A DNA stretch of 64,000 nucleotides from Octopus bimaculoides (lineage: Eukaryota): positions 41,847,398 to 41,911,397 of the forward strand of contig NC_068982.1 of NCBI RefSeq assembly GCF_001194135.2, read 5' to 3'. How positions within the stretch are numbered: position 1 is the first letter of the stretch; each line of letters starts with the position of its first letter. Positions 15,455 to 43,811 of the stretch are shown here, in pieces. Made by a program: the position numbers and the translations under genes. The notes beneath the pieces were generated by a model that saw only the letters and a program-made list of their open reading frames with translations, did not search any database and was not told the origin of the DNA.

Positions 15455-15559
15455 TCAGGTTAGGGAACCATATCCAAATAAAGGATTTGTCCAAACTTTT
15501 GTTCCATCAGGTTTCATGTTGATCATTGATCCATAAAAGGCCAGTTGACTGCAATTTTT
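15455..15559 (-). CDS. FERM-only protein terminal coding exon 9 (KNCSQLAFYGSMINMKPDGTKVWTNPLFGYGSLT*)
   Basis: Acceptor attctctttcag|, phase 0 matching exon 8, 34 open codons then TGA; candidate AATAAA on the minus strand near 14938-14943. Confidence 0.72.
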   Translation of the reverse strand, partial: KNCSQLAFYGSMINMKPDGTKVWTNPLFGYGSLT

Positions 15560-15984
15560 CTGAAAGAGAATGCATACATTAATAAAAACAGCAATAGTAA
15601 TTATAACAATATCACATTAATAATATTGATTTTTAATTAGTAATAACAACATCTGAGATAACTGTTAATTCTTTTCAAAACTACTTAACAATTAAATTGA
15701 TGATATTCATCATCATCATCATCATCATCAACATCGTTTAACGTCCGCTTTCCATGCTAGCATGGGTTGGACGACTTGACTGAGGACTGGTGAAACCGGA
15801 TGGCAACACCAGGCTCCAATCTAAATTTGGCAGAGTTTCTACAGCTGGATGCCCTTCCTAACGCCAACCACTCAGAGAGTGTAGTAGGTGCTTTTACGTG
15901 TCACCTGCACGAAGGCCAGTCAGGCGATACTGGCAACGGCCATGCTCGAAATGGTGGCCACGCTCAATAATTGACAAGTTTCTG

Positions 15985-16730
15985 TCATTCTGTCGAGATG
16001 ATTTTTTGGGGGACATTTACTGCAGTCTTAGGCATTCTAAACAACACATCCAAGTTATGCTGTATGTGCTTATAAATATTCCTTACAAGAATGCTTCTAT
16101 TGCTAATAGCTAATCTAAACACATCCTGCCAGCTTTGGTGCTATATTATATCAGTTTTGGATGATTTTCTGACTGGAATTTGGTGTTTGGCTGTCTGTTA
16201 CTGATGATCTGAAACACGGTGAAATCCTGTGATACAACAGTTCCATCTACCAGTGTCGACGAAATATTGTCAACTAATATAATCAGTGCTTTTCAGCATT
16301 TATTGTCTACATGAGAAGATTTCTCAGGATGTTTATTGCAGACTTAGGTGTTACAAACAACACACCCAATTTTGGTTGGATGTGCTAATTAATATTTGTT
16401 ACAAAGGCTGCTTCTGTTGCTAATAGGTAATTTATACACAGCCTGCTAGTTTTTCACATTACTGGTTGCTGAGTTGATGCTAAATTATATTGGTTTGGAT
16501 GATTTTCAGTCTGGCATTCAGTGTTGGCTGTCTTGTTGATGATCTGTAATATTGTGAAATCATGTGATACAACAGTCCCATCTACTGGTACTGACAAAAT
16601 ATCATCAACCAATATTACCAGTGCTTTGAAGCATTTGTCATCTACATTAGATGATTTATTGGGATGTTTACCGCATCCCAAGATGTTATAAACAACACAT
16701 CCAATTTAGGCTGGATGAACTAATTAATAT
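15985..16730. repeat. Diverged tandem duplication, period about 316-335 bp, about 2.3 units
   Basis: Anchor acaacaca(t/c)c at 16041, 16357 and 16692; the units align throughout. Confidence 0.8.
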
Positions 16731-18199
16731 TTTAAAGACTTTCAATATGGCATGAGAAGTTCACTATGTTAGAATACATGTCTAACTGCATTAGGATTTT
16801 TACTGCCATACTTAGCAAGAGAATTTGTTAAACATAAAAAAAGAATAGAATTAAAAAAAAAACTAATGATGGGCTTGTGTTGATAATAAGTAAGTGTAAG
16901 TTTAAAGTGGAATTAATTTGGTTTGTCAGGAGGAAAAAGAAAAGTTTAACACTTTATCATTCAGCTATGAAGGATCTTGTCTGAAATACTAGATTTATCT
17001 TTTTTATTTTACAGCAAACAAATTTGTTACTCCATTTTGACCCACTTAAGGACATAAGAAAAATTGCTTTATATCAAAAATGCTTTTAACTCTTTCATGA
17101 TATTTCTAATTAGATATACATTACCCATGTGTTTTAATTCATTTTGAAAATAATCAAGAATTTGGAAAGATTTAGTAAAATGAATAATTTTAACATTATC
17201 AAACTGGTATTTGAAATATAACGTAACAAAAGTTTTGACATAAATTTATGTTGGAAAATTTTATTTAGATACAAATAATTTGTGCCATTGAACCAGAAAC
17301 AATCTCAGATGGTCTGACATAAAAAAAAAGTTGAAAAACAAAGGTGTGAAAAAAATATTTTAAAACAGGACTGGTGAAGAAAAGGAAAATTTTAGGTGTT
17401 GAAAAGAGATATAAACAGAAATGATATGAAGCAGTGAAATCAAAATCTTTAAAATTTCATTGTTGCAAAATATTTCAGCAGCAATGTAGTATGAGAGTTA
17501 AGACAAATCTTATTGTAGAGTAGAATGTTAGGGGATTAATTTGGATCATATATTGGAGTGTCAATGAACAAAATAAGTAAATTCATTCTTGAGACTTACA
17601 GTTAATCTGGACATTAACTGCAAATTTGCATATGGCACAATGACAGTGATAGGGACAAAGGAGAACAAGTTCTCCCAGAGTTACACTTCTACATAGTTGT
17701 TCAGCCTGCTAGAATTAGCAGTCAAATCTCCCTTAAATCACACCCTACCCTCTCAAAAAAAAAAAAAAAAAGACATATCGGATAATGTAGTGTCAGGTAC
17801 ACTTATTAGCATACCATGTTATTCTACCCATAACCATCTTAAAGATGAGATGGTTATGGGTTGAATGCTTTTGATCATAGTTTCACTGAACCAGGGCTGA
17901 TTAGGGTTAAGTAATAACAACAATGACACATTAACTCTTTTGATACCATATTCCTGTTGAAATATCACTCTTTAATTCAGTTAATTTTGGAAATAATGAA
18001 GAGTTTAGAAAAGTTAAAATAACTTTGTCATTAGTAAGATGATGTTTGAAACAGAAATGAACATGAAATTTTGAAAGAAGGCTTTAATTTAGATCACTTT
18101 AAAACAGGAAGTTTGTATCAAAGGGCCAGGGACAGTCTCAGGTGGGCTGGTACTAAAAGAGTTAATTAAACGATATAAAAAAGATAACTCTCTATTTAC

Positions 18200-18399
18200 C
18201 TGGATACTTTTAACAATGTCATGGGTGGTAGATAAAAGGTCATCAAGCTGCTTGCTCTCAACACAAATGCGTTTTTCTTCTCGAAACATATTATTTGCTT
18301 GATCATCTTTATGTAACACTGTGTAGGTGAATATTGCTCCAGAATGATCTATAGACCACTGTTTAACACTACTCCATGAGACAGAAACTGAATCTTCGT
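18200..18399 (-). CDS. FERM-only protein exon 8 (EDSVSVSWSSVKQWSIDHSGAIFTY...DIVKSIQ), F3/PTB-like lobe
   Basis: Acceptor ttactttcag|, donor CAG|gtaaat, 200 nt, phase 1 to 0; WxxxxxW pattern matches SNX27 FEWDEMQRWDTD. Confidence 0.9.
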
Positions 18400-20321
18400 C
18401 TGAAAGTAATATGAATTAAATCTCACTGAACATAATCTGTATCCATGATAATTATTTTCCTCAATTTAAAATTATTACTGTATTTTCCAGCATACAAAGT
18501 GAACTTTTCAAACCAAAATTTACAGCCAAAAAATGTAGGTGGATTTATACCTCAAGACAACTTTGGAGGACCCAAAGTTCCCTGTGAAATGCAGTAGGAT
18601 TTGGGAAGATAGTGACAATGTTTAAATGTTTACAGTACATGTTTACACTATCTGCTGCATTGACTTGTATACCAGAAAATCTGAAAACACATTTTTGATA
18701 GCACAAAAAAAATGCATAACATTAGTTTAAAATTTTGGCACAAAGACAGCAAGTTTTAGAGGAGGGGGTAAGTCAATTACATCGACCCCAGTGCTCAACA
18801 GGTACTTATTTTATTAACCCTCAAAGGATGAAAGGCAAAGTTGAACATGGCAGAATTTGAACTCAGAGTGTAAAGACATGAAATGCCACTAAGCAGTTTG
18901 TCTGACATGCTAATGATTAATTATGCATAATATTGTAAAATGAGCAATTAAACACAAAATAAATGTTTCATAGGATTTTGATAGATACAATTTGCACACC
19001 TACAAAACACCATAGAATAACAGATTAATACATTTTGTAAGTGTAAGCATTTATTTTATAATTGGTTGTAAGGCAACAACAGGTAGAAATTTAGAGTGAT
19101 GGAAAAAATGCTCAATGGCATTTTTTCCAACAATTTATGTTCTGAGTTCAAATCCTGCCAAAGTCAACTTTGCCTTTCATCCTTATGGGGTCAATAAAAT
19201 TAAAGTACCAGTCAAATGCTGGGGGGTTCAATTGTATAGACCCAGTACTCACTAATCACATGCCTAAATCAGAAACACTAATACACTATTTATTGATTGT
19301 AGATGAATGTATTTGATAAAAGGTCAAATTACATTCTTTCACAGCACACAAATGCATTTAATTTTGTGGATATATTACCTGATGATCTACCAATACCAGT
19401 GATGATCTGTAGATCATTGCTAGTTTTCATGGAGCTGAGCTGAGTTATTCCTCTTATTTTATATGGCATGAAATGTATTGCACTTTCTGAATGAGATGTT
19501 TCTACTTACTTTGCAAGAAGTACTGAGAAAGTGTTGAAGTGGAGCAAGATTATCTTCTACTACCACCATGGTTAAGATAATAGCATTTATTCTGCTTAAA
19601 AGCTATTGCCTGACTAGCTATAAATGTTGTTGATAATGAAAGTGTCAAACAGAGAGAGCCTCAACATGGTCACTTGAATTGTTAGAAGTAATAGCTAAAT
19701 CTTCCTCACATCATACCCTTCAGTTTAAAAAATATCAGCCATCACTAGTTTTTTTGGAGTGAGCTTTATTTACTATCCTTTCATTAATAATAGTAGTTTA
19801 GTTGAGACATTTCACTTATTCTTCATGGTATAAAAATGTATTCCACCATTTGAAATAAAATCATAACCCTATGTATACAATGCTTAAAAGTAAGATGAGA
19901 TGACCATAGTTGGAACTCCTTCACTGATAGGTCTACCTGATCAGGCTGACTTTAAGTTAAACGACAACAGTGAAACTGTTTCTCATTGGTGATTTTCAAC
20001 AACATTATTTATACATTCTTAAACATTTTCTGAACTATTTGTCGATAAAGTGTACCACAATTTAAACATGTGTTCATTTTATAAAATGATGTCTACATTA
20101 AATGTTCAATTTATATTATTTCTATATTTAAAGTATGTCATTTTAAGTTGCCAGAGCAGATAGTAGATGTAACTCATTTCAAAACCTACTGAAATTCTCA
20201 ATAGGTTAAAAAGCAAGTCAGTTTAACAAAAGCCTCTACATTTTTTTTTTTTGTATTTCTGTGACAGATCAACCTGAGTTTTTCTGCCCTTCAAAATTAA
20301 AATAATGATATAAATTCTTAC

Positions 20322-20382
20322 CTGTTATTATGCACAAACCTTTCTGTGATAGTGTGACTTTACAGGGGTTTCCTAAATGATT
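20322..20382 (-). CDS. FERM-only protein exon 7 (NHLGNPCKVTLSQKGLCIIT-D)
   Basis: Acceptor cttcttttctag|, donor CAG|gtaaga, 61 nt, phase 0 to 1. Confidence 0.88.
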
Positions 20383-21282
20383 CTAGAAAAGAAGTAAAGA
20401 AGAAACTAAATAAAGAATTTGGGAAATCACAACTTAAGAAACTGAATAAAGAATTCTGGGAAATATTTAAGTTCTAGTTCTTTATTAAATAACTTTATAT
20501 TAATTTTGGGAAAGACTTTCTTTCCTTCTCTACTGTCCTATCATCCTATTTGCATTACTTTTGCTGCCAAAGGCACCCCTTCTATATGTATCACATCAAA
20601 TTTCTCTCTCATTATAAACAACTATCTCTCTGTTTGCCTTCCTCTGATATCTTGTCTACAACCTTTAATTACATTCCTTGACAAATTCTCTGTTCTTTCA
20701 ACTCAACCAACTCAGAAGCTGAAAGGATATTCTGCATATCTTAAAAACACATCACAAAATTATGGATTTTCTGGCATACAAGTTGACATAGTATATCAAG
20801 TAAACATTTAGTATAAGCATTCAAACATCACCACTATCTTTCCAAATCCTGCTGCATTTCATAAAGAACTTTTGTCCCTCAAAATTATCTTGGTGTATAA
20901 ATCAACCTTCCATTTTGGGATGTAAATTTTGGTCTGAAAAATTTGACTTGTGTGCCAGAAAATATACTAACTTTTTCTTTAACAAAACAGTTCAGTTTTC
21001 CTAAGTTCATCTTTTTAAATCACAATAACATGCATTCATATATCATATGCATTTATTTCATAGTAATATGCATTCATCAAAATTAATGAAAAAAAAAAAA
21101 AACTCTTGCAAATATATCATGAAGCTTACATTATATTTAGTAGTTCTAAACAGCGAGGTCCATTAATCTCAAATCTTAGAAAATTATGATGAAACCAAAA
21201 TTGATGTAAAAGAGTAGCATTCATCCCTCCCAGCTATACCAAATACTAGACCTAAAAGATGTTAGAAATAACAATGAGTTAC

Positions 21283-21401
21283 CGTGAAAACAGAAGACTG
21301 CTTGGACAGAAAACAGTTATCTATGACAACGATATTATAACCAGCAAGGCGTTGACAAAGTCTCACAAAAGCTGATTTAGAACAATTCAAACTGGATAAC
21401 T
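21283..21401 (-). CDS. FERM-only protein exon 6 (LSSLNCSKSAFVRLCQRLAGYNIVVIDNCFLSKQSSVFT), F2/F3 junction
   Basis: Acceptor ttctattttcag|, donor ACG|gtaact, 119 nt, phase 1 to 0; RLAGYN corresponds to SNX27 TCEGYN. Confidence 0.9.
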
Positions 21402-22430
21402 CTGAAAATAGAAGCAAAAAGAAATGTGTTCAGAATGTTATATAGTATAAGTATACAGCAGTGTATGGAGTGGAATGAAAACATCATGTATTGTCTGTGA
21501 AAGGTTTGTGAGTAGTGTGGTGGTTGAGTATAGACTGAACTGATATTGTGATCTGTGGAGAAGAGTGTGTGGGTTAGTGATATCAAAGATGAGGGTTTCT
21601 AAAATATTTTATGGAGTGCATAGAAGACAAATTGGTTTTGGGGATCTTACTCCACTTGGGCTTTTACTGGGCTTTAGAAATGTGATGAAAATATTATCAG
21701 TTTCCAGATTCTCATATTTGAGAGTATCAAAGCAAACAACTGATGTTGGTGAGTGCAGAAATTCCTTTAAGCCTAACGTATTTCAAGTGAATACCTCTGA
21801 TTTCATTGAGATCCTGAAACTTCTAAACTTTAGAAATTTTCTACTGTTTTTTCTAGTATCTGATAGAAGGAAGAAATCTCAGCTAAGATCTTGGTGTAAG
21901 ATGCATATTATGTGTTTTGTATTCCTGTTTTTTTTTCTTCGTGTGATTTCTTTTTTTGCTGGCTGATTATTTACAAAAATGTTTTATAAAGATGTTTTCT
22001 TCTTCTTGAAGTGTTGTTATGTTATTCGAAGTTGTTATAGCAACAGAAGGTGTGGATAGTATTGCAGCAGGTGCTGCTATAGCAACTACACATATATAAC
22101 ATTGACAAAACTGCATCCCAAAGTTTAGGGTTCCTCTAAGGGGCCACAAAATACTTCAGCACCGACATACTTCAGTACTGACAGTATACAAAACTCCAGT
22201 AAAATTGACATTCAAGAACTGCTCACACATCTAAGATAGTGGTAGTACTATTACCGCTCCTCACCATCACCACACCAAAAGGAAAACTATTTGCTTCACC
22301 AAGGTTCACTCACCAGCATGCTACAATCACTGCATCACTTTAAGAGGGTATAATGAATATACAGACATTGTTTCTTTGACAAACAAACAAGCAAGCATGT
22401 ATAGAGAGAGAAACACTTAAATGAACTTAC

Positions 22431-22472
22431 CATCTAGAGCAATCTGTTCCTCAATACTTGCAGTTAAGTGAC
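22431..22472 (-). CDS. FERM-only protein exon 5 (HLTASIEEQIALD-E)
   Basis: Acceptor ctgtttttcag|, donor ATG|gtaagt, 42 nt, phase 1 to 1. Confidence 0.85.
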
Positions 22473-22512
22473 CTGAAAAACAGTGAAATATTTATACCAG
22501 TTGTGACAGAGA

Positions 22513-22605
<93 letters not shown>

Positions 22606-23386
22606 GTGGGGGGAAATAAATATTCGTACATGTCAAAATTCTTTATTCATTTAATTTCTAATGAAGGCTCTCAACACTTAAGATTTTGGTGACCCCATAT
22701 ATATATAATCCAAAATATAAACAGTAAGAAACCATACAATATTGGTTGGCGTTAGGAAGAGCATCCAGCTGTAGAAACTCTGCCAAATCAGATCGGAGCC
22801 TGGTGTAGCCATCTGGTTCACCAGTCCTCAGTCAAATCGTCCAACCCATGCTAGCATGGAAAGCAGACGTTAAACGATGATGATGATGATGATGATGATG
22901 ATGAAACAAAGCTAACAGTAAAATGATAAACAATGTTTATTTTTGTATACCTTCACTTTATTTATATTTGAAAAGTTTTCTTCTACATTTTTTAATTGCA
23001 AAGTCTTTGATTGGATTCTTACTATGACACCATAAATACTTTGAAATTATATTTCTGATCATATAAACCACTTCAAATATTATTTTAGCAAATTTGAAAT
23101 AATTTCTTTTGTGTTGCAAGCCATTTACCATTCCTGTGGCGCTTCCACTTCCCTTGATGCTTTAAGCACATGCTTATTTTGCTTAATGGTTAATCCAACA
23201 CTGATCCAACTCTAGAAACTATGCCAAATGAAACATCTGAGTAAGACTTGTTCCTCTGGCTTGTTGGTGTCTGTTAAAATGTCCAACCTATCCAGCATGG
23301 AAAGCCAACCCAAAATGATGATGAAGACGATATTAAGTTCCATGCTTCCTGAAATTCCCCAGCACTACTCCAGCTGTACCTTTTCC

Positions 23387-23465
23387 ATGTTTATGGCTTT
23401 TCTATGTTTATGGCTTTTCTATGTTTATGGCTTTTCTATGTTTATGGCTTTTCTATGTTTATGGC
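23387..23465 (+). repeat. 17-bp minisatellite (ATGTTTATGGCTTTTCT), about 4.7 copies
   Basis: Direct inspection. Confidence 0.95.
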
Positions 23466-23635
23466 TCTTTTAATGTTCACTTTTCTGTCTTTCTGTATTT
23501 TATTCTATATACTGAGCAAGCACTTTTGGCTATCATTACTTTCTTCCTTATTTCTGCTTTCTGTCCCCTCTTTACCCTTCTTCCATGACTATTAGTATAT
23601 CTGAATACTGTAAATAATAAACTCAGTCAATCAAT

Positions 23636-23674
<39 letters not shown>

Positions 23675-24384
23675 CATCATCATCATTTTTAACATCCACT
23701 TTTCCATGCTTACATGAGTCAAACAGAATTTGAGGTAGACTTTCAATGGCCTGATTCTCTTTCCATTTCTAAACAAGGTAATATTTTTCTGTGACCAGAC
23801 ATGTTTTTCTGGCATGTTTTCACAAAATGTTGGAAATGAGTGACACTGCTTGTGTGACAGTGACAATCATTTACAATTATCATGCAATGTCAAGACAAGG
23901 ATATACACACACAGACACACACACACATACAGATACATACACATGTAATGGGCTTCTTTCAGTTTCTATCTATTAAATTCATGAAACTGTTGGCAATTTT
24001 CTATGCTTGAGAAGACATATCAAGCTTAGTAAAATCATAGTTGTGGCCAGTGACAGATTAAAGGCACCCATGCTGGTAACACATTAAAGGCATCCGGTAC
24101 TTTAAGGAGTGGTTGGCATTCAGAAGAGCATCCACCTGTAGAAACTGAGCCAAAACAGACTAGAGCCTGGTGCAGCTCTACAGTTTACCAGTTCCAGTCA
24201 AACTGTCTAACCTGAGTCAGCATAGAGAAGGGATGTTAAATGATGAGGATGAAGACAAGGCTTCGGTCAGCCCGGGACTACAGTAGAAGATACACACCCA
24301 AGGTGCCACACAGTGGAACTGAAACCATAACCATGTGGTTGGGAAGCAAACCACACAACTATGCCTGTGCCTTATATATCGTCA

Positions 24385-25008
24385 TCATCATCATCATCGT
24401 TTAACGTCCGCCTTCCATGCTAGCATGGGTTGGACGATTTGACTGAGGACTGGTGAACCAGATGGCTACACCAAGCTCCAATCTGATTTGGCAGAGTTTC
24501 TACAGCTGGATGCCCTTCCCAACGCCAACCACTCCAAGAGTGTAGTGGGTGCTTTTATATATATATATATANNNNNNNNNNNNNNNNNNNNNNNNNNNNN
24601 NNNNNNNNNNNNNNNNNNNNNNNNNNNNNNNNNNNNNNNNNNNNNNNNNNNNNNNNNNNNNNNNNNNNNNNNNNNNNNNNNNNNNNNNNNNNNNNNNNNN
24701 NNNNNNNNNNNNNNNNNNATGAAAAGACATTTGAGTGAGGTCGTTGCCATTGCTGCTGGACTGGCTCCTGTGCAGGTGGCATGTAAAAAACACCACTTGA
24801 GCGTGGCCATTGCCAGTACTGCCTGACTGGCCCTCGTGCCGGTGGCACGTAAAAGCACCCACTACACTTTCGGAGTAGTTGGCATTAGGAAGAGCATCCA
24901 ACTGTAGAAACTCTGCCAGATCAGATTGGAGCCTGGTGCAGCCATCTGGTTTGCCAGTCCTCAGTCAAATCGTCCAACCCATGCTAGCATGGAAAGCGGA
25001 CGTTAAAC

Positions 25009-25055
<47 letters not shown>
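24385..25055. mobile_element. Two inverted copies of an RTE-tailed non-autonomous element, family D; others at 15710-15965 (-), 22745-22905 (+) and 26056-26305 (-)
   Basis: Shared ...catgctagcatggaaagcggacgttaaacgatgatg tail; high identity among copies. Confidence 0.85.
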
Positions 25056-25056
<1 letters not shown>

Positions 25057-25451: not shown

Positions 25452-25562
25452 CAATTTGTAAGTCGTGAAGCGCTTGGTAATAAATAAGATCACAAGTTAC
25501 GTCATCTTCCAAAAGTTGGTTTTCTATGTCCAAATCAAAACACCATTTATAGAGGAATAAAT
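25452..25562 (-). CDS. FERM-only protein exon 4 (LFLYKWCFDLDIENQLLEDDVTCDLIYYQALHDLQI-G), F2 lobe
   Basis: Acceptor tgtttcag|, donor TTG|gtaagt, 111 nt, phase 1 to 1; aligns by eye to SNX27 IRKWLFTTEEE...FFHQAVDDVKKG. Confidence 0.9.
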
Positions 25563-26852
25563 CTGAAACAGAGATACAATAACATATACAAGTTTTCCAA
25601 TTTTTCCGTTTCCATATTTGCACGTGCGCATATGTAAAGGTGCAGGGATGTGTGTGTGTGTGTATGTGTGTGCATGTGTGATTGGGTGGCCATATATTTG
25701 TTATTTATTTCTATGCCAAGCCTAAAAGATATTTCGACTGTAATTAAACAGACTCTCATCCAGACTTTGTACATCTACGACTACATTATCTGGTGAATCA
25801 TTCCTTTCTTTAAAGTTAGAAGCATGTGATATAAAAAAAATTTGGCTTCTATTTCTAGCAACTGAATGATTATTTAGAGTAGGGGTACCATTCCTTTGTC
25901 CACACGTGTCAGAAACAAGATCTGTGAGGAACTAGCATGCCTCATTCATCTACTGAACTATTATATAGTAATTACATTCTGTAATTAACAAATAAAGATA
26001 ATGGTAATAATAATAAATTATACAGGCTCAAGGCCAGATATTTGAAGGGTGAGAACATCATCATCATCATCATCGTTTAACGTCCGCTTTCCATGCTAGC
26101 ATGGGTTGGACGGTTTGACTGAGGACTGGTGAACCGGATGGTTATACCAGGCTCCAATCTGATTTGGCAGAGTTTCTACAGTTGGATGCCCTTCCTAATA
26201 CCAACCACTCCGAGAGTGTAGTGGGTGCTTTTACGTGTCACTGGCACAAAGGCCAGTCAGGTGGTACTGGCAATGGCCACACCCAAAATGGTGTATTTTA
26301 CGTGAGTCCCCTGCCACGACTTGACTATTGGTATTGGTTTCTTTATGTCTTTGTATCTTAGTGACTCATATAATAAGTGTCAGGCTCCGAAAAATAAGTA
26401 AACCTTTCAATGTGATGCTCCATTATGGCAACAATCCAATGACTGAAACAAAAGATAGAAGTATAGTTCCATTCCAAATCAAACAGAATAAACAACCTGA
26501 AATTCCCTGGGTGAACATATTTAGGTCATTGCACAATGCTTAAATCATTGAAATTACCATTTAGCTAAAATAACATACTGAGGTGATAATGCAATGTTTT
26601 AATCACAACAATTATTAGTCACACTCAAAAATCAGCCAGTATTTTTTCCAAGATGTTATTGGCTGAATAATTTGCGCCAGTGAGTCAGACCCAGCACAAA
26701 GGCCATAGATTACTGACAACTGGTGTAGAGGCTCCAGTTACATAAGCTCACATCTATAATTGTCCTCTTTGTAGAATGGGGTTCATGTCATCAGGCCTTA
26801 GTAGAAAGGATTATTATTATTGAAATAAATAAATCATTATTATTATTATTAC

Positions 26853-28380: not shown

Positions 28381-29281
28381 GCAGTATCATGGTAACATGT
28401 CTTAATCAGACACCTTAGCAGATGAGATATGAGTACCATAGCTAACCAACCAATTAAGATTATTAGTACTGAACTACCTCAACAAATGTCATTTAATTCT
28501 CAATGGCTCAGCCCATGTGGTTTTTAAATAGGTACAACAATGAAACATAATTTAATGTAAACAGCAAAAAGGTTTATCTAAAATTTGAGCTTAATTACTC
28601 TTGTGGTGCTGGAGGAGATAATGAGAAACTATTCTAGAGTATCCTCCCTTAAATAAGGTATTTGGTTTGGATTCTTCTCTGTGACTTGTGGTTTAATCTC
28701 AAGTCAGCTTTGTTTAAGATGACCTATAGTGAAAATGTATTCTATCTTTGATTATCTCGTCTTTGGGGATATTTAGAACCACTTTACTTAAGTACTTGTT
28801 TGTTTTTTTGACCATGTAATGTAACTTGAGGGAAATTGGTTGCTATTGTTAACAGGGTGATTGATCATGTAGAGCAGGGACCCCAACTATCAGGATGCAG
28901 ACTAGTACCAGGCTGCACAGAAAGAATAAATTTCTAAATTCTATTTCTATTTTATTGATTATGGCAATTTGCAAGGTGTTTTTGTATCATATGTGTATTA
29001 TATATGTAACAATTAAATTGTATATTATGCACTTTGTGTTTTGTAATATGCATGATCCCCCAGTCTGAGGAAAAATTGTCTTGCATGAAACCAGTCCGTG
29101 GTACAAAAGAGATTGGGGGCGGCCACTCATGTAAAGGCCCCATTACTGGCTCATTTTGATAACATGTATTTAAAGGTTCTGTATGTATATTCAGTTTTTT
29201 ATTTGTGTGCTTTGAGGTTTCTGTACTGTTTTTGCTAGTATCATGATTCCAGGGATGAGGGATAAAATAAAAAAAAATTAG

Positions 29282-29732: not shown

Positions 29733-29834
29733 CTTGGCAAGAAGATGGAACGTAATCAGTGAGTTTCAGTTTTTGAGTTGGTTTTCGTTTACCCATCATG
29801 ACAGCGAAATAACAGTGGTACTTCTTATTTACAC
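29733..29834 (-). CDS. FERM-only protein exon 3 (VNKKYHCYFAVMMGKRKPTQKLKLTDYVPSSCQ-D), end of F1
   Basis: Acceptor gttctattccag|, donor AAG|gtaatt, 102 nt, phase 1 to 1; YF and KL spacing resembles the SNX F1 lobe. Confidence 0.85.
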
Positions 29835-32556: not shown

Positions 32557-32626
32557 CGATTTTGTCAAGTACTTTTTTATGCAGATCCTCAACAAGAACT
32601 TGGTTATCGATTTCACGTAGAACCAC
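32557..32626 (-). CDS. FERM-only protein exon 2 (VVLREIDNQVLVEDLHKKVLDKI-G), F1/RA-like lobe
   Basis: Acceptor ttttcttttag|, donor CG|gtaata, 70 nt, phase 0 to 1, open frame. Confidence 0.85.
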
Positions 32627-33119: not shown

Positions 33120-33720
33120 TACCTACACCTTAGCACCATCATAGCATCTGATGTGGCTTTTTAAACCAGACAATGTTCTGAAAAGACACCCAAATAGATT
33201 GCACCTCTGATATGGATCACCAAGAGCTGCAGATAAGTTCTGCTCTTTGTGGATCTTAAAATGTCTTCTTTTGAGGCCTCCATTGGATTTGCAAACCTTC
33301 TGGCATTCAAAGGTGTGCACAGACATATACACAGAATAGTTGGTGGAGGTTCGTTTTTCATGTGTTCACAGATGAGATTTGAGGCCAGCAAAAGACAGGC
33401 ATGGTCTGTCACAGACTGTGCACACAAAAAGGTCATTGTCATTCACATTCTTGATCGTTACATTCTTCCTTAGAATCTCTTTTGAGTCTTACTTGCATTA
33501 TCCTGGCCTCTTCAAATGATTTCACTCCACACCTTTGTTCGCCATCCAACTCAGTCCAAAGCAAGGGTTTCTATATCTTCTGGAACCATTCCAAGTGACT
33601 TCATAGTAGTCCTTATGCCATCCTTAAACCTTTTGTTTTTAGCTTTACACTGCAAGTTGCTTGATAATTTCAAGTTTGCAACATTTAACTTTTTGGGTTA
33701 TGCCAGGTCACTCTCGAGTG
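33120..33720 (-). mobile_element. RTE-clade LINE C-terminal fragment
   Basis: KRFKDGIRTTMKSLG...LALD*VGWR and C..C.S..GLK / TLSGLKSHIR zinc-finger-like motifs. Confidence 0.7.
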
Positions 33721-35112
33721 CTACTGGTAACATGTAATCCAGTACAACCTGTCGGATGGTCAGGTTGTTGGCAACTAAACTGGCAACCCCACCAGGCTTG
33801 CTTGGACACCTTTCGGGATGAAAAAATAAGACCTGTCAAAGGGCAGATGAACTCCTGAACAGTCAACGGCCATCCAACAAAATGTCAGTAAATATGTATA
33901 CATCATTTGTTTTTACATACATACATACCCACACACATCACAAAATATTTTTCAAAATTTCAAGTTTCATTTTGTAGATATATATATGTGATAACAGTAT
34001 GTATGTGTGCATATGCACTAAGTTTTTCTTTTTTATACATTAAATTGCAATATAATTGTAATCTGTATCATCTGAAAGGTACTTGTAGAAAATTTCATTT
34101 AAAAATATTCATTCATTGGAAAGTTATGAGGAAACAATGTTGGTGCGTGGTGGTGATAATATTTGTGGTGGTGGTGGGGGGGGGGGCACATTTGGGTTGG
34201 TATGCCAAATATTCTAGTTTTGAGAATATTACAGAGAAGGGTTTATATAGACCTAAAATAAACTAGTTTATAAAAGAGGAATTGTTGTCATGGAGAGAAA
34301 GAGAAGTGAGTGAAATAATTGCTATGAAAAATGTAACAGTCAGTCATGGATAGCAAGGAACATAAGCCTTTGTGGATAATTTAACAGAAAATTACAAAGC
34401 AAAGTAAAAAAAAAAAAAGAAACAAATGCGAAAGGAAACTAATACAAACGCAACACTGTTTACATAGTGCAGGCAAATAATGAGCTCAGGAAAGCCACAC
34501 TGAGATGTCTGCTTGACTGACAGGAAACTAGATTTCTAGGTGCATTAGTTACATGGCTGTAATTAACTGAACATGGTATTGTGAAGCAAAGGCTGTTGGC
34601 TATTTCAGTTGTCCACTGCTTGTAGTAGATAATTTCTCCAATACAGGTGATATAAATATTACTAGTGGTGGAGCAAGGGAAAGCAGGTAATGAATATAAC
34701 TGCAAGAACTATTGTTACTGTTGCTGTTGTTTAATCTCATAGAGGCCCTGGTTTAGCAAATTTATGCAAATTTATGATCAAAGGCATTTTAACTAGAATC
34801 ATTCCATCTTTTTATATAACCAAAGCTACGTAACATCACCACTGCCACCGACTGTAAATGCTGGATGAACATGAGTTCAGTATATTGCTAATTCTCTTTT
34901 TTTTTGTAATTTCTTCTGTATTGCTCAGAATCCCTAGGTTTCACCTGTTTCTTTCCATGCTTCCTTCTCCCCCCCCCCCCCNNNNNNNNNNNNNNNNNNN
35001 NNNNNNNNNNNNNNNNNNNNCTTCACCGACTGCCACCAGAATCACCATTGTCATCATCACTGTTGTCATTGTCGTTCTGTCATCCACTTTTCCATGTTCA
35101 TATGAGTCAGAA

Positions 35113-35343
35113 AGGCGGCGAGCTGGCAGAATCGTTAGCACGTCGAGCGAAATGCTGAGTGGTATTTCGTCTGCCGTTACGTTCTGAGTTCAAATTCCGC
35201 CGAGGTCTACTTTGCCTTTCATCCTTTCGGGGTCGATAAATAAAGTACCAGTTATGCACTGGAATCGATGTAATCGACTTAATCCCTTTGTCTGTCCTTG
35301 TTTGTCCCCTCTATGTTTAGCCCCTTGTAGGCAATAAAGAAAT
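35113..35343 (+). mobile_element. tRNA-derived SINE, family B (ggcggcgagctggcagaatcgttagc...)
   Basis: Multicopy: about 3380-3600, 18740-18910 (-), 19070-19260, 31180-31350 (-), 39600-39830. Confidence 0.8.
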
Positions 35344-36797
35344 ATATGTTCATATGAGTCAGAATTTATTGAGAAAGATTTCTTGTAGTCAGATGCCCTT
35401 CCTGTTACTACCCCTCACTTGTTTCCAAGAAAGGGAATACTTTCCCGTGGCCAGACATGTTTTTTCAAAGAAGACTGGAAATGAACATCACCTGTATAAT
35501 GGTGCTGCTTGTTTACAACTATCTCATGATGTCAAGACAAGGGTACACACAAACACGCACACAAATACACACACATACCTTTTATCACTTACATGTTTCA
35601 CTCATCTGACTGCGCCCATACTGGGGCACTACCTTGAAGAATTTTTAGTCAAATCAATCAACCTTAGTGCTTATATTTTTTTAAACCTGATACTTACTCT
35701 ATCGGTCTCATTTATCAAACTGCTGAGTTACAGGGATGTAAACACACCAACACTGGTTGTCAAGTGCTAGTGGGGAACAAACACAGTCACAAAGACACAT
35801 GCACACATGGGCTTCTTTCAGTTTCTGCCTACCAAATTCACTCATAAGGCTTTAGATGACCCAAAGCTATAGTAGAAGACACTTGCCCAAGGCGCCACAC
35901 AGCAGGACTGAACCTAAAACTATTTGGTTGGGAAGCAAGCTTCTTACCACACAGCCATGCCTGCACCTAAATAAATATATATATATATATAGGGTACAAT
36001 ATATATATGTATATNNNNNNNNNNNNNNNNNNNNNNNNNNNNNNNNNNNNNNNNNNNNNNNNNNNNNNNNNNNNNNNNNNNNNNNNNNNNNNNNNNNNNN
36101 NNNNNNNNNNNNNNNNNNNNNNNNNNNNNNNNNNNNNNNNNNNNNNNNNNNNNNNNNNNNNNNNNNNNNNNNNNNNNNNNNNNNNNNNNNNNNNNNNNNN
36201 NNNNNNNNNNNNNNNNNNNNNNNNNNNNNNNNNNNNNNNNNNNNNNNNNNNNNNNNNNNNNNNNNNNNNNNNNNNNNNNNNNNNNNNNNNNNNNNNNNNN
36301 NNNNNNNNNNNNNNNNNNNNNNNNNNNNNNNNNNNNNNNNNNNNNNNNNNNNNNNNNNNNNNNNNNNNNNNNNNNNNNNNNNNNNNNNNNNNNNNNNNNN
36401 NNNNNNNNNNNNNNNNNNNNNNNNNNNNNNNNNNNNNNNNNNNNNNNNNNNNNNNNNNNNNNNNNNNNNNNNNNNNNNNNNNNNNNNNNNNNNNNNNNNN
36501 NNNNNNNNNNNNNNNNNNNNNNNNNNNNNNNNNNNNNNNNNNNNNNNNNNNNNNNNNNNNNNNNNNNNNNNNNNNNNNNNNNNNNNNNNNNNNNNNNNNN
36601 NNNNNNNNNNNNNNNNNNNNNNNNNNNNNNNNNNNNNNNNNNNNNNNNNNNNNNNNNNNNNNNNNNNNNNNNNNNNNNNNNNNNNNNNNNNNNNNNNNNN
36701 NNNNNNNNNNNNNNNNNNNNNNNNNNNNNNNNNNNNNNNNNNNNNNNNNNNNNNNNNNNNNNNNNNNNNNNNNNNNNNNNNNNNNNNNNNNNNNNNN

Positions 36798-36840
<43 letters not shown>

Positions 36841-37169
36841 TAATCATCATCATTATTTAGTGTTCACTTTTCCATGCTTGTATGGGTTCAGATAGGATTT
36901 GCAGAGATGGATTTTCTATAGAAAGATGCCCTTCCTGTTGCCAACCCTCGCCTGTTTCCAAGTAAGGTAGTATTCCCCATGACCAAACATGTTTACATGG
37001 AAGGCTGGAAATGAAGGACACCACTTGCAACATGGTGACATTTATTTACAGCTGTCACATGAAGACAAGGCAAGGAGACAGCAGCACACACATGCAAGCA
37101 TACACACAAGCACATTATTTACATTTGACAAGATGAGGATAAATATCTGTCAAATGTAAATAATGTACA

Positions 37170-37470
37170 TAATTTCTCATCTCTCAAATATAGAACTGTA
37201 TTATCTAATCGGTACGGAGCCGATATAAGACATACAGAGAAACTCCATCAAAAACTAGCTCATCTTTCAAACCGTCTAACTTTCCTGTGTAAATGTAGAG
37301 ACTCAAAACTAATACCACCTGGCTTGAATGTAATGACATCATTGCATTCATATAAAGCTCGAAGAGTAACAGAAAGAGCAGGATGAAGGCTGGAGAGTAT
37401 ATCAGCTGAAATGTAGCGTGTTAACAACAAACAAGATAATTCCTCATCTCTCAAATATAGAACTGTATAC
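37170..37470 (+). mobile_element. Penelope-like element N-terminal ORF fragment
   Basis: YGADIRHTEKLHQKLAHLSNRLTFLCKCRDSKLIPPGL resembles the PLE N-terminal FL..C....LIP.GL motif; flanked by a 30-bp direct repeat. Confidence 0.6.
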
Positions 37471-38186
37471 ACACAAGCATATACGCACACACATGCAAGC
37501 ACACACACACACAATAGATTTCTTTCAGATTCTACCTACCAAATCCTCTCACATGGCTTCATTTGGCCCAGGGATATAGTAGAAGACACTTGTCTAAGGT
37601 GTCATGCAGTTGTACTGAACCTGAGACTATATGGTTGGGAATGAAACTTCTTACCACACAACCATGCCTGTGCCTATTATGTCTATATGCATATATATAT
37701 ATATGTGTGTGTGTGTGTGTCTATCTACCTGTATGTGTGTGTGTATGTAACCAAAAACTATCAAAACATACATATAAACATATAAAAAACATACATTGTT
37801 CCATCATTTAAATATTGATTTTTTTAAAACCTCTATCATTCATTAACCCTTTATCATTGAAACTGACCAGATCCAGCAACTCACACCTACCCTACAATGT
37901 CATTCTGAAAATAAACTATCACATCTTCAAAATCTCTAAGCTACAAAATGTATCAGTGTCTACCTACTTAATTATATCTCACTTTGTTTGTGAGAGCACC
38001 AGGACTAGTGGGTTAGAGTGTAGCACTCATGGTTGTGAGATCATGAGTTTGATTCCTGGACCAGGTGTGTTGTGGTGTTCTTGAGGCAAAGTGCTTCATC
38101 TCACATTGTTCTACAATCTCTTTGACATCTGACATGTGGAACAAGTTCGGAGGAGGGGTTGTTTTGAAACTGAAATCCATTCTGTT

Positions 38187-38255
<69 letters not shown>

Positions 38256-38639
38256 GTGTACCTCAATTTACATTGTTAATTGGCTCCAACATATGTGACT
38301 TGAAAAACAATATAACAAAAAAAATCATTAAAAAACATTTATAAGTATATATCTGTTTTAAATAACGGTTTGTACTTATTTTCACATCTATTTTATTTGA
38401 TTTTCCATTCAGTATTGATTTTTAGGTGTTTTTAGATTCCTATGCTTTTAAATATGTTAACTGAGATCAACATAAAGTTGGATAAATTGACGAAAGTTAA
38501 GGCTTATTTTTTCCATTAATTTCTTAAAAAAACTATGTAAAGTCAAAAAGGATGTAACTTAGAACAACATAAGTTGATTGACCAACAGACTGACCTACCT
38601 ATTTATCTAAACACACATTCACATGCATGTTGTTACTGA

Positions 38640-38900
38640 AAGAGACATAGCACAACTGGTATGTAAGAGAATTAACCGAGAGGAAAAGCAGTTTGAATTA
38701 GTGCTACTGATGTCCTCTGCCTAATGAGATAACTGTGGATGTACTTAACTAGGAGTAAATATTTATCTACCATATTTTGATTGACCTAACAAAGGTCTTT
38801 GACAGGGTTCCATGCTCTGTAATCAGTTGGTTGCTAAGGAAATGATGGGTAGATAATAGGTTATGAGAGCCATGAAAGCCAAGACAGAAGATGAGGTACA
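38640..38900 (+). mobile_element. Degenerate RTE RT fragment
   Basis: ttgacctaacaaaggtctttgacagggttcca encodes DLTKVFDRVP, resembling DLEKAFDRVP. Confidence 0.55.
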
Positions 38901-38904
38901 CTTT

Positions 38905-39101
38905 ACTCTCTTTTACTTGTTTCAGTCATTTGACTGCGGCCATGCTGGAGCACCGCCTTTAGTCGAGCAAACCAACCCCAGGACTTATTCTTTGTAAGCC
39001 TAGTATTTATTCTATCGGTCTCTTTTTGCCGAACTGCTAAGTTACGGGGACGCAAACACACCAGCATCGGTTGTCAAGCAATGGTGGGGAGACAAACACA
39101 A

Positions 39102-39177
<76 letters not shown>

Positions 39178-39340
39178 GACGGGCTTCTTTCAGTTTCTGT
39201 CTACCAAATCCACTCACAAGGCTTTGGTCAGCCCGAGGCTATAGTAGAAGACACTTGCCTAAGGTGCCACGCAGTGGGACTGAACCCGAAACCATGTGGT
39301 TGGTAAGCAAGCTACTTACCACATAGCCACTCCTGCGCCT
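38905..39340 (-). mobile_element. SINE family A, near full length; diverged or partial copies near 2830-3215, 35570-35960, 41560-41810, 44760-45050 and 47960-49040
   Basis: Near-identical to 12240-12626. Confidence 0.85.
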
Positions 39341-39834
39341 ATTCATTTCAATAGATGAAGCAGATGTGAAAAAATGCCACAGACTGAGAGATGGGAAACA
39401 GTGTGAGCAGGAGAGCTGAAGTGGCCTTTGACTGGTGATGTGATGCTGTTTATGTAGATGTAATGGAAATGTTCAGTGATATATGATTACCTAACCTATG
39501 GCCAGTTTTCCCAGTTATAGAAGACTACATAGCTGTTTTCATTGGTAAATAATGTTTTCATTGATGCAGGTGAAATGGTCTGAAATATATATGGAAGCAA
39601 TAAGGCAGTGATCTGGAAGAATCATTAGCACACCAAGCAAAATGTTTAGTGGCATTTCATCCACTCTTACATTCTCAGTTCAAACTCTGCTGTAGTTGAC
39701 TCTACCTTTCATCCTTCTGGGGCTGATAAAATAAGTACCTGTGTTGAACACTAGGGTTGAGATAATCAACTTAATTCCTCTCCCAAAATTGCTGACCTTA
39801 GACCAAAATTTGAAACCAGTATATAAGGAAGTGA

Positions 39835-41330
39835 TGCTGTTGGGTCCAAGAAGGGTAGTAGTGTTCTGAGTGTAAAGGCAAGTGTTACACTGGGTTCAGG
39901 AGTAGGGGAAAGGTATGGGTTGCATGTCAGGAGGGTTAGAGGAGCTGCAAGCAAAAAGATCACACAGATTAGGGATCCCTTTGAAGTAGGGGAGGGGGTG
40001 TCATTTATGGAATAAGGAGGAAGCAGTAGGATTTAAGTAGAGTAAGGGGAAAGTGCACAAGATGAAATGTTGAGGAGATAAGGTATTAGGGTGGAAGGCG
40101 AGACGGAAGGACACTTATGGGTGGGATAGGTGTGGGGCATGAGTGCCAAAATGCAATCAATGTTATGTGCATGAAAGGCATTATTGACAACAGTCTGAGG
40201 ATAACCTCAATGCACAAACTGGACAGCCATCAGATAGGACTGGGTTACAAAATCAAGATCATAGCTACAGAAGCAGTGAAGGAGTAGGATTTATGATGGA
40301 AGATTTAGAGTGGCTGGGGTGGGAAGAGGTGAAGCTGAGGAGTCAGGTGAATTATAGAAAATAGATGTGGAAAGGGAGAGTTTAGGTGATCAATGATGAC
40401 AGAGGAGGAGGAGATGGTTGAAGAGAACTTGAGGGCTAGGTGGAAATGATTGATGAAGTTAATGAAAGTAGTGAATTAAGTATGAGTGAAAGAGGTGGTC
40501 CTGATGCCATCCTCGATGTGTTTACTATAAAGTTCGGAAGTGGGACCTGTGAGCCAGGCAAAGACTTGAGCCCTGATGTAACCTACAAAGAGGTTAACAT
40601 AGCCAGGCCTATCCTAGTGATCTGCTGGTAAAATTTGCCATGGAAAGGAAAACAATAAATTCAGCAAGACAAAGGAAAGCAGAGGTGCTTGGTTTGAGGT
40701 TAGTGTGATGATCTTAAAAATACTCAAGGATGAGAAGATTAGCCTCGTGTCGGCTGATAACGTATAGGGATTTAACATCTAGAGTGAAGAGGTGTATGGA
40801 GGAACTAGATGAAAAGAGTGTGAGGAGGGCAGTAACTAAGGGTTGGAAGAGCAGTAATTGTTTGCTTCCCCACCAGTTTCAGTTTCCACACACATTCCAC
40901 GAACTCTGTCCTTCCATTCACTTCTCTTACAATGAAATGTATGCAGCCGTCAAGTGCAAAATGTTAAACCTTACAAAGTGACCAGTTCAGATAGTTTCCT
41001 GTCTATGGTCAACTGGAGAATATTTCGATGACTTTGTTCATGAAGACTGTGGAGGTATTGCATGAGGTACCTAGATAAAGATGTGGATGATGCTTGGTCG
41101 AGGAGGGTAATGGATAAAAGGTAGTCATATATTCAGTGAAGTCAATATTGATGCAGTTGACGCCAAGCAAGTCGTTGGTGCATAAGTGGGGAAGAGTGTA
41201 GGGGCAAAAAAACTGAACCTTGAGTATGGTTATAAATAACCAGCTCTTTGACAAGTCAGAACCTCTCTTTCCCTTTTTTGTGACCATTATGAAAGGTTTC
41301 ACACAGCTAGATCAATTAGGAGCTTTCTTG
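39835..41330 (-). mobile_element. Degenerate Penelope-like reverse transcriptase
   Basis: Minus strand YVNLFVGYI...LYSKHIEDG...FINFINHFHLALKFS resembles the PLE RT motifs ANLFMG, RYIDD and HPxLKF; many stops. Confidence 0.7.
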
Positions 41331-43745
41331 CTGTCATTACACACTAGTGATGTTTTGTTCCTGAAACTTTAAGGAAAACAAAGTCGTCGTTTTTGAGAAA
41401 CTTTCTTATCTGTCTGATTATGGATCAAATATCATATGTTACTCATATTTTATCAACCATTTCACCAGAAGATAGGAGGATTAAGGTGACAACATTGAGT
41501 CAGCTGTGTTTAGTTTGTTTTATTCCTATTTTCTCTGTACAAATTCACAAAATTTATTTCTTACTCGAGTCAGTCATTATACTGCAGCCATGCTGGGGCA
41601 CCACCTTGAAGCCATTAGTCAAATAGATCGATCCCAGCACTTATTTTTTTGAAAGTTCGGTACTCATTCTTTTGATCTCTTTTGTCAATCAGCTAAGTTA
41701 TGGGGACGCAAACAAACCAACACAGGTTGTCAAGCAGAGGCAGGGGACACACTCACACGCGCGCGCGCGATGGGCTTCTTTCTGTTTTCCTCTACCAAGT
41801 CCATTCAGAAGGCTTTATGAAAATAATTAAAACTAATTAATAGCTTCAGGAAAATAAATAAATAAATAAAAAACTTTAGATTAGGTCACTAGGACAACGA
41901 AAGAGTAGATTGAATATATACACTCATTCACCTGATATACAAGATAACATTCCAGTAATAGCAAAACGGTTATGCTATTTGTATTTTACCATTCCAACTA
42001 AGTTCCATTGACTATCTAAAATTTTTTTAAAAACGTAATTACATCCAATTAGATGATATGTTTGTATCAGAAATATATAAAAACCGTCTTTTATCTTGAT
42101 TAAATTCAAATACGTCATCTTAGCAATCAAAACTTAGTGTTACAAGAACTGCTGGAGTTATGTGGGCGGGTCAAATATGCAGAGAGAGTAAATTGTCACA
42201 ATCATTCAACTAAGAGAGAGAGAGAGATCCGCGAAACAAAAAAGGAATACAAACGCTTATGGGAAATAGCAAGCAAGCATCTGTTAAGTACGGAAGGGTC
42301 ACACAGCTCGTGCTATACTAAATACTCCGACACAGAAACACACACATACACACTCAATATATGTATTATGTACATATGGGGATGTACGTGTGTGTACATT
42401 ACACAACATATATTAAAAGCTAAGGACAGCTTCTGTGCGTTTATTTGACTAGAAGGAGCAATCAAATCCTTTCAAATCACACACTATCGTCCTGTATAAA
42501 GGAACGATACACTGGCTACTGTAGTCCTAGATATGCAAAAAAATGTGCAATGGTCGTGAGAGGAACGCCTTTCATCATACGTCTGCTCAATCAGGCTAAC
42601 TTGGGTGGGACTGAACAACATCAACACAATAATATTGCTTACGTGCGCAACAACATGTCACACACAAAGAATCTATTTTTGAAATAAGGAATACATCTTA
42701 TCGATTAAAAATATCAATCCAGCACGTCAAGGGAACAGACGTTCGTTATATTTTATTGGGATGAAAAGAAAGTGAAACGAGAGAAACGGCTGATGTAATT
42801 ATGTGCAATCTGGTTTACGCCTTGTTTAATTATTGAAAACCACTGGGTTCCTCAGTTTCAAGGTATTTATCAAATCGAATATTAACATTAATTTAATGTT
42901 GAAAAAACAAAACAAATGTGCTTGCATTAAAAAAAATCCGCCCACCGCAGAAAATTTGGGACACTGCTATATTTAAAATTAATTGAAAGAAACACACATC
43001 ATCTCAACAGAAATATTGTAANNNNNNNNNNNNNNNNNNNNNNNNNNNNNNNNNNNNNNNNNNNNNNNNNNNNNNNNNNNNNNNNNNNNNNNNNNNNNNN
43101 NNNNNNNNNNNNNNNNNNNNNNNNNNNNNNNNNNNNNNNNNNNNNNNNNNNNNNNNNNNNNNNNNNNNNNNNNNNNNNNNNNNNNNNNNNNNNNNNNNNN
43201 NNNNNNNNNNNNNNNNNNNNNNNNNNNNNNNNNNNNNNNNNNNNNNNNNNNNNNNNNNNNNNNNNNNNNNNNNNNNNNNNNNNNNNNNNNNNNNNNNNNN
43301 NNNNNNNNNNNNNNNNNNNNNNNNNNNNNNNNNNNNNNNNNNNNNNNNNNNNNNNNNNNNNNNNNNNNNNNNNNNNNNNNNNNNNNNNNNNNNNNNNNNN
43401 NNNNNNNNNNNNNNNNNNNNNNNNNNNNNNNNNNNNNNNNNNNNNNNNNNNNNNNNNNNNNNNNNNNNNNNNNNNNNNNNNNNNNNNNNNNNNNNNNNNN
43501 NNNNNNNNNNNNNNNNNNNNNNNNNNNNNNNNNNNNNNNNNNNNNNNNNNNNNNNNNNNNNNNNNNNNNNNNNNNNNNNNNNNNNNNNNNNNNNNNNNNN
43601 NNNNNNNNNNNNNNNNNNNNNNNNNNNNNNNNATATATATATATATATATACACATACATATATATATGTGTGTGTATACGTGTACAGACAGAGGGAGAG
43701 AATAGGGTGAAAAATAAACCAAACATGGGGACAGATATAACTTAC

Positions 43746-43811
43746 TTTAACACTGGCATCTTTTGCGGCAAAATATCCCACAGAAACTGATGTTAAACTA
43801 TCGAGCTCCAT
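43746..43811 (-). CDS. SNX17/27/31-type FERM-only protein, coding exon 1 (MELDSLTSVSVGYFAAKDASVK)
   Basis: ATG at 43811 with an in-frame TGA 12 codons upstream; strong donor AAA|GTAAGT; phase 0 matches exon 2; lies in a CpG-richer region. Confidence 0.75.

Follow-up and report, generated by a model that had tools for sequence, protein, structure and literature searches.

A nine-exon FERM gene on the minus strand

We analysed a stretch of 64,000 nucleotides (nt) of the Octopus bimaculoides genome (contig NC_068982.1, positions 41,847,398 to 41,911,397; this whole stretch is called the window, and positions are counted from its first letter). The window is AT-rich, with 35% GC, and contains 12 runs of N. 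Its minus strand carries a gene of nine exons for a protein of 291 amino acids (aa), which resembles the FERM module of the sorting nexins SNX17 and SNX27 and ends in a conserved tail with a cargo-like motif. Relatives of similar length were found from sponges to amphioxus, and the tail may serve these proteins as a built-in plug of their own cargo groove.

The gene runs from position 43811, the A of the ATG, to position 15455, the final base of the TGA stop, as determined by splice-site reading and by mapping of the annotated protein. The exon set was fixed by mapping the 234-aa isoform X2, which was found with three exon peptides, and by inspection of the splice sites:

43746..43811, minus strand: exon 1a, ATG and 22 codons, MELDSLTSVSVGYFAAKDASVK; first strands of the F1 lobe; donor gtaagt
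32557..32626, minus strand: exon 2, 70 nt, VVLREIDNQVLVEDLHKKVLDKI; strand and helix of F1
29733..29834, minus strand: exon 3, 102 nt; end of F1, contains Met58
25452..25562, minus strand: exon 4, 111 nt, LFLYKWCFDLDIENQLLEDDVTCDLIYYQALHDLQIG; KWCFD strand and first F2 helices
22431..22472, minus strand: exon 5, 42 nt, HLTASIEEQIALD; F2 helix
21283..21401, minus strand: exon 6, 119 nt; end of the short F2 (LCQRLAGY) and beginning of F3
20322..20382, minus strand: exon 7, 61 nt; F3 strands
18200..18399, minus strand: exon 8, 200 nt; F3 strands with W199 and W205, and the groove helix with V253
15455..15559, minus strand: exon 9, 105 nt including TGA; conserved C-terminal tail, KNCSQLAFYGSMINMKPDGTKVWTNPLFGYGSLT, then the stop
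15476..15493, minus strand: within exon 9, codons of the candidate pseudo-cargo motif Φ-x-N-x-x-[F/Y] (Φ, hydrophobic), W280-T-N282-P-L-F285; N282 is invariant in the family

Splicing yields an open reading frame (ORF) of 876 nt, that is 291 aa and the stop, and all eight introns follow the GT...AG rule with consistent phases. An earlier reading of the letters without database searches (the sequence-only reading) had described nine GT-AG exons with matching phases in one 291-aa frame and an in-frame stop just upstream of the ATG. Both statements were confirmed, the first by the splice sites, the length of the coding sequence and the annotated protein, the second by a TGA at 43847-43845 followed by a TAG, 12 and 14 codons before the ATG. 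Two motif spacings given in the same reading were wrong: the protein contains KWCFDLDIENQ and LCQRLAGY. On the plus strand these motifs are absent, and a single match to L..L.GY at 28752 was dismissed as chance.

The gene had also been called hidden, which does not hold, since exactly this model is already present in three public collections. The product is identical to RefSeq XP_014786013.1 (LOC106880541 isoform X1 of O. bimaculoides, "uncharacterized"), a match far beyond chance, and the same protein is found in EukProt and in UniProt (A0A0L8FXJ9, 'FERM domain-containing protein'). The sequence-only reading was right in not recognising a named gene, as the public records list it as an uncharacterized or FERM-domain protein only. 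Clustering at 90% groups it with O. vulgaris CAI9718496.1 and five O. sinensis isoforms. Annotated isoform X2 of LOC106880541 (P0001, 234 aa) starts at Met58 (29733-29799, minus strand) inside exon 3 and would therefore lack most of the F1 lobe. A supposed alternative first exon was rejected when this isoform revealed it to be part of exon 3. Several O. sinensis isoforms (X2, X3 and X5 truncate the fold) are cut short in F3 or the tail, and all of these, isoform X2 of LOC106880541 included, may be real products or by-products of annotation.

Five N gaps flagged by the scan program all lie within introns 1, 2 and 4, and no exon borders a gap. For comparison we used the loci of O. vulgaris (L004), O. 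sinensis (L005) and Argonauta hians (L003), none of which contains any N. All nine exons are present there with the same AG/GT boundaries, except for one GC donor in Argonauta, and the spliced coding sequences equal the annotated proteins of 291, 291 and 292 aa exactly, so that no coding exon is concealed by the gaps. All four octopods have an intact ORF. Pairwise ratios of nonsynonymous to synonymous substitution rates (dN/dS) range between 0.11 and 0.47, with values of 0.14-0.16 in comparison to Argonauta at a dS of about 1.1, indicating purifying selection on the gene.

Similarity to SNX17 and SNX27 and the PX-less family

The sequence-only reading had proposed a stand-alone FERM protein of the SNX17/27/31 type. 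In Pfam the top match is SNX17-31_F2_FERM over residues 89-149, with an expectation value (E) of 2.4e-5. A phmmer search against the sequences of the Protein Data Bank (PDB) returned the SNX27 FERM first (1.9e-6) and then that of SNX17 (2e-3). With a profile of 20 family members the SNX27 FERM was matched across F1-F3 at 4.3e-22 and the SNX17 FERM at 2.5e-15; talin, KRIT1 and FARP reached 2e-3 or worse with the same profile. AlphaFold2 gave confident models for the octopus protein (predicted local distance difference test, pLDDT, 91.4; predicted template modelling score, pTM, 0.86) as well as for a sponge member (pLDDT 90.6, pTM 0.88), both of which show four short F2 helices. When the two models were compared with the PDB by Foldseek, the top five or six matches were SNX27 (7CT1, 8TTT) and SNX17 (4TKN, 4GXB) at E 8e-15 to 2e-12 and template modelling scores (TM) of 0.64-0.81. 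Merlin followed at about 1e-9, so that SNX17 and SNX27 stand 4-5 orders of magnitude ahead of classical FERM proteins. Given these rankings and the confidence of the models, we consider the assignment to the SNX17/27-type fold solid as a prediction of structure. The earlier proposal is thereby supported, and the comparison of structures it had suggested points to no unrelated FERM family. The predicted layout is a ubiquitin-like F1, a short four-helix F2, an F3 resembling a phosphotyrosine-binding (PTB) domain, and a conserved tail of 33 residues.

Comparison with the known proteins reveals both likenesses and differences. SNX17 (4GXB, 4TKN) shares the atypical FERM fold (Foldseek E about 1e-13 to 1e-14, TM up to 0.81), and in both proteins a C-terminal N-x-x-F motif follows the FERM module, NFAF in SNX17 (PMC11339278). 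However, SNX17 has a PX domain, sequence identity is only about 17%, and its tail is tethered by about 75 residues versus about 20 in the octopus protein. SNX27 (7CT1, 8TTT) is the best match by sequence, and its F3 tryptophans W471 and W477 correspond to W199 and W205, but it has PDZ and PX domains, which are absent here, and is devoid of an N-x-x-F tail. SNX31, which also has a PX domain, falls under the two Pfam models for F1 and F2 (PF21273, PF21271) that top the list for the octopus protein. Classical FERM proteins such as merlin/ERM, protein 4.1, talin and KRIT1 share the F1-F2-F3 architecture but have a longer F2. The F3 lobes of talin and KRIT1 also bind NPxY/F peptides.

SNX27 binds the acidic DLF motifs of SNX1 and SNX2 through R437, R438, K495, K496, R498 and K501 (PMC9038204). 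None of these six positions is conserved as basic in the family; the alignment has acidic, polar or hydrophobic residues instead. Coupling of the ESCPE-1 type is therefore unlikely, and SNX27-like binding of acidic DLF motifs was rejected as a function of the octopus protein.

An exhaustive HMMER search of 1.84 billion representative sequences found 47 proteins. A word-indexed protein search proved insensitive for this family, returning 1 and 4 matches and at first missing isoform X1. Nearly all of the better matches are about 280-330 aa long, and their alignments, at 25-32% identity, extend over the entire query. Some 25 relatives with names, drawn from seven phyla, measure 279-335 aa and share the start of the octopus protein. 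They comprise gastropods (Bulinus, Patella, Lottia, Haliotis, Batillaria), bivalves (Ostrea, Tegillarca, Pecten, Mytilus), cephalopods (Octopus, Argonauta), the annelid Owenia, the nemertean Tubulanus, echinoderms (Anneissia, Acanthaster, Lytechinus, Holothuria), the hemichordate Glandiceps, the amphioxus Branchiostoma and sponges (Corticium and, in a second subfamily, Amphimedon). Family members were matched at E 1e-25 to 1e-10, PDZ-containing SNX27-like proteins only at about 1e-4. All of the named members are recorded as 'uncharacterized' or 'hypothetical', apart from one amphioxus hybrid record that was automatically named 'sorting nexin-27-like'.

Several features mark the family, all of which are found in the octopus protein: a length of about 280-330 aa, the start MEL(D/Q)xL at F1, a [QR]-[KR]-W-C-F strand (Y-K-W-C-F in octopus), W..V..W in F3, and a C-terminal Φ-x-N-x-x-[FY]. 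Since molluscan, annelid and amphioxus members have the MEL(D/Q)xL start followed by the first F1 strand in common, we regard this start as ancestral. A Lottia gigantea record of 1289 aa with a VWFA extension (P0013, XP_009044282) was considered as a multidomain form and rejected. It is most likely a read-through gene model, because the match is limited to residues 5-291 and every other member is short. A metagenomic protein of 2904 aa from JGI (P0026) contains 14 repeated matches to octopus residues ~182-224. In the literature searched, whose coverage was limited so that one may exist, we found no paper on a PX-less SNX17/27-like FERM family. While the locus model is already public, what is new here is the family and the mechanism proposed below.

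A cargo-like tail and the alternative explanations

We aligned 30 sequences from both subfamilies, sponges included. Besides Met1, only L105, L129, W205 and N282 are invariant. N282 belongs to the tail and in octopus sits in the motif W-T-N-P-L-F; at this site 28 of the 30 sequences show [hydrophobic]-x-N-x-x(-x)-[F/Y], and 29 show N..[F/Y]. The consensus Φ-x-N-x-x-[Y/F] is that of the cargo bound by the F3 groove of SNX17 (PMC11339278). In human SNX17 the groove is also occupied by the protein's own tail, 459-NFAF-462 (Butkovic et al., PMC11339278), which lowers the affinity for cargo and is released by cargo, a form of autoinhibition, and the groove is disabled by the mutations W321A, V380D and M384E (PMC11339278). 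W321 corresponds to W205, a tryptophan in all 30 sequences, and V380 to V253, which is I, C, V, L or F in all 30.

In the AlphaFold2 models a beta strand directly precedes the motif Asn, at residues 278-281 in octopus and 273-276 in sponge, with pLDDT of at least 91. The linker before the motif is predicted with a pLDDT of 59-73 in the sponge model, and the octopus model has a high pLDDT throughout residues 261-288. A strand before the Asn together with a poorly predicted linker in sponge would be the pattern expected of a tail docked by strand addition, and we infer that the tail would be seated in the protein's own F3 groove.

Since the tail motif matches the SNX17 cargo consensus and parallels the autoinhibitory NFAF tail, we propose a self-capped groove. 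In this mechanism, sorting signals of the form Φ-x-N-x-x-[Y/F] would attach to the F3 groove as an added beta strand, as they do in SNX17. The motif W-x-N-x-Φ-[F/Y] at the C-terminus of the protein itself would fold back into the groove as a built-in pseudo-cargo, and the module would stay capped, or autoinhibited, as long as no better ligand pushes the tail out. Lacking a PX domain, the protein would not read phosphatidylinositol 3-phosphate (PI3P) itself and must reach membranes otherwise; recruitment might proceed through ligands or partners or, in certain lineages or isoforms, possibly through a lipid anchor at the N-terminus. We favour, with moderate confidence, the view that the gene encodes a functional cytosolic protein of an old PX-less family, composed of an SNX17/SNX27-type FERM module and the tail only, which would work by this self-capping mechanism. 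The sequence-only reading had suggested a soluble competitor or adaptor for NPxY cargo or Ras-family GTPases in endosomal recycling; to this guess the analysis adds that the protein has a conserved NxxF-type motif of its own.

A further step is more tentative. The family may possibly represent an ancestral metazoan branch of SNX17-type adaptors without PX, apparently absent from vertebrates and classical invertebrate models, whose members are self-gated readers with the tail as the gate. We would not yet rate this wider picture as likely.

Several observations weigh against these views. The two Pfam matches remain below the gathering cut-offs, with 24.6 bits versus 27 for F2 and 15.1 versus 26.7 for F1 (SNX17-27-31_F1_FERM). 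The position of SNX17 M384 is occupied by Gln (Q257 in octopus) in 19 of the 30 sequences. The predicted tail strand could instead edge another lobe, for example F1. With about 20 residues the linker is short, and its own sequence is conserved too, so that the tail may form a lasting part of the structure and not a switch. Finally, no vertebrate, arthropod or nematode occurs among the named matches, which are only part of all matches. Losses in vertebrates and ecdysozoans rest on this absence among the listed matches only and stay provisional, because a third, more divergent subgroup (P0035-38, P0047-50) is without organism assignment.

The tail may alternatively work in trans. The N-x-x-[F/Y] motif would then be a ligand of another PTB or FERM protein such as SNX17, SNX27 or SNX31, or would mediate head-to-tail self-association, making the protein a decoy cargo or a regulator. 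Its fit to the SNX17 cargo consensus agrees with this explanation as well, and the acidic-hydrophobic ends of sponge and deuterostome members described below hint at external partners. Against it, single-chain models of two distant members give a confident strand before the motif, which fits docking in cis, and the short tether favours intramolecular binding. The two modes are compatible, as the SNX17 tail acts both in cis and in trans (PMC11339278). We consider it unlikely that the tail acts in trans instead of in cis.

It is rather improbable, too, that the tail is a fixed strand which permanently fills the F3 groove, with the protein functioning through other surfaces (F1 with Ras-like GTPases, basic or lipid-binding patches of F2 and F3) and binding no NPxY-type cargo. 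A short, partly conserved linker (F265, S/M, a DG turn) and the high pLDDT over residues 261-288 of the octopus model are consistent with such a strand. The sponge model suggests a tethered ligand over a rigid extension, with a pLDDT of 59-73 in the linker versus 91 in the motif, and of the three groove residues required by SNX17 for cargo, W321 is retained and the V380 position has a hydrophobic or small residue throughout the alignment.

We also asked whether the annotation is cut short and the gene in fact a canonical PX-FERM sorting nexin, namely SNX17, SNX27 or SNX31, with PX or PDZ exons located upstream or within gaps. Room for such exons might be seen in intron 1, which spans 11 kb including 1.4 kb of N, and in a further gap at 45399-45783 near an alternative first exon (1b, see below); look-ups of octopus transcript contigs returned genome records only. 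However, Pfam detected no PX domain in the 291-aa protein, whose conserved family N-terminus sits at the start of F1. Stop-free segments of at least 25 aa on the minus strand between 43812 and 64000 contained no PX or PDZ match either. The sole Pfam match there belongs to a neighbouring gene:

61350-61895, minus strand: Jagunal gene (PF07086), ORF of 182 codons, E 1e-37 to 2.5e-40, covering profile positions 30-187 of 187

This gene lies upstream of the FERM gene in the same orientation, and its first ~29 residues are presumably encoded in another exon. The public record places no further gene within 10 kb of the locus.

Searches by tblastn with four SNX27-like proteins matched the FERM exons only and no PDZ. 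The gap-free loci of the three other octopods yield the same proteins of 291 or 292 aa, and in relatives from sponges to amphioxus the protein starts at the same MEL... and is about 290 aa long. A contig of 951 nt in Logan (SRR24189501) contains an uninterrupted ORF of 289 aa, 49% identical to the octopus protein, with an in-frame TAG seven codons before MELDSL; it is a spliced mRNA, probably from another cephalopod. Canonical SNX27-like proteins, moreover, are much more distant than the family, as given above. The statement of the sequence-only reading that the protein has no PX or PDZ domain was thus borne out, and truncation is largely refuted and very improbable. That the gene is a decaying or lineage-specific relic without function, as the fold-truncating isoforms (X2; O. 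sinensis X2, X3 and X5) might suggest, is refuted by the intact ORF and dN/dS values of the octopods and by the conservation of the family, which reaches from sponges to cephalochordates and includes invariant residues in core and tail.

Returning to the proposed self-capping tail, its very end differs between lineages. The octopus tail ends in GYGSLT and has no acidic-Leu end similar to IGDEDL. Sponge and deuterostome members (P0046, P0087, P0110, P0018, P0076, P0058) continue past N-x-x-F to a second conserved end (FSSIEED, FTSLEDL, YTDLSA, YIDLSTL), which is acidic-hydrophobic, is reminiscent of the Retriever-binding IGDEDL of human SNX17 and has no counterpart in molluscan members, octopus included. 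Judged from these sequences, the SNX17-like end could couple some lineages to Retriever/Commander. Other lineages may replace targeting by PI3P with N-terminal myristoylation.

Alternative first exon, other elements and meaning

An alternative first exon lies outside the coordinates given by the sequence-only reading, 1.4 kb upstream of exon 1a:

45249..45335, minus strand: exon 1b, MGKTVNERLDQRLKRTQDSELASGVTQCG; donor gtgagt, joins exon 2 in phase 0

It encodes the same N-terminus as O. sinensis isoforms X1-X3 and is found in the O. vulgaris and O. sinensis loci; a tblastn search of the Argonauta locus did not find it. Within the genus Octopus, exon 1b and its flanks are equally conserved. 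Its 5' untranslated region and promoter are incomplete due to the assembly gap directly upstream. The N-terminus encoded by exon 1b (MGKTVNE...) would substitute for the first strands of F1. Starts of the MGxxxS type also occur on N-terminal extensions of sea cucumber (MGMTESR...) and sea urchin (...MGGSQSR...) members. These starts are similar to the N-myristoylation signals of, for example, hippocalcin and NCS-1. N-myristoylation might replace the missing PX domain in the exon 1b isoform and the echinoderm proteins; this idea stays speculative, since the flanks of exon 1b are equally conserved and the exon was not found in Argonauta.

Transposon remnants are located at 4550-5224 on the plus strand and at 11328-11564, 45882-46136 and 52270-52554 on the minus strand. 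One matches zf-RVT (E 2e-7), the zinc-binding tail of a reverse transcriptase, and another is part of a GIY-YIG nuclease (E 1e-4). There is also a gag-like ORF with a weak CCHC zinc knuckle, and a fragment with the reading PPYSPDLVPMDFHLFP is mariner/Tc1-like by eye and has no Pfam match. GIY-YIG nucleases of this type are carried by Penelope-like elements. A short interspersed repeat occurs in many copies and both orientations in the introns and the 3' flank (15741-15857, 22775-22870, 24447-24542, 24865-24960, 26080-26175). It is marked by the recurring pseudo-ORFs ...LVNQMATPGSNLIWQSFYSWM... and ...SPQSNRPTHASMESGR and is probably an abundant octopus short interspersed nuclear element. In intron 1, at 33126-33488 on the minus strand, ORF fragments show C2H2 zinc-finger-like spacing (FVCTVCDRPCLSFAGLKSHL; CNLFGCLFRTLSGLKSHIRC) and no Pfam match; they may derive from a degraded zinc-finger gene or a retroelement tail.

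SNX17, SNX27 and SNX31 form by definition a group of PX-FERM proteins, and to our knowledge studies of their FERM module have always dealt with it joined to a PI3P-binding PX domain. The family described here consists of the FERM module alone, kept under purifying selection and present from sponges to amphioxus, and its own tail includes a motif of the cargo type. Should the tail gate the groove, the pseudo-cargo autoinhibition found for SNX17 in 2024 would be older and more general than thought, and the mechanism would be open to study in a minimal protein of 290 residues. Cargo-released autoinhibition would then be an ancient, separable module that predates the PX domain or is independent of it. 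For the genes of octopus, oyster, mussel, abalone, sea urchin, sea star and amphioxus now listed as 'uncharacterized', this provides a testable hypothesis of function.

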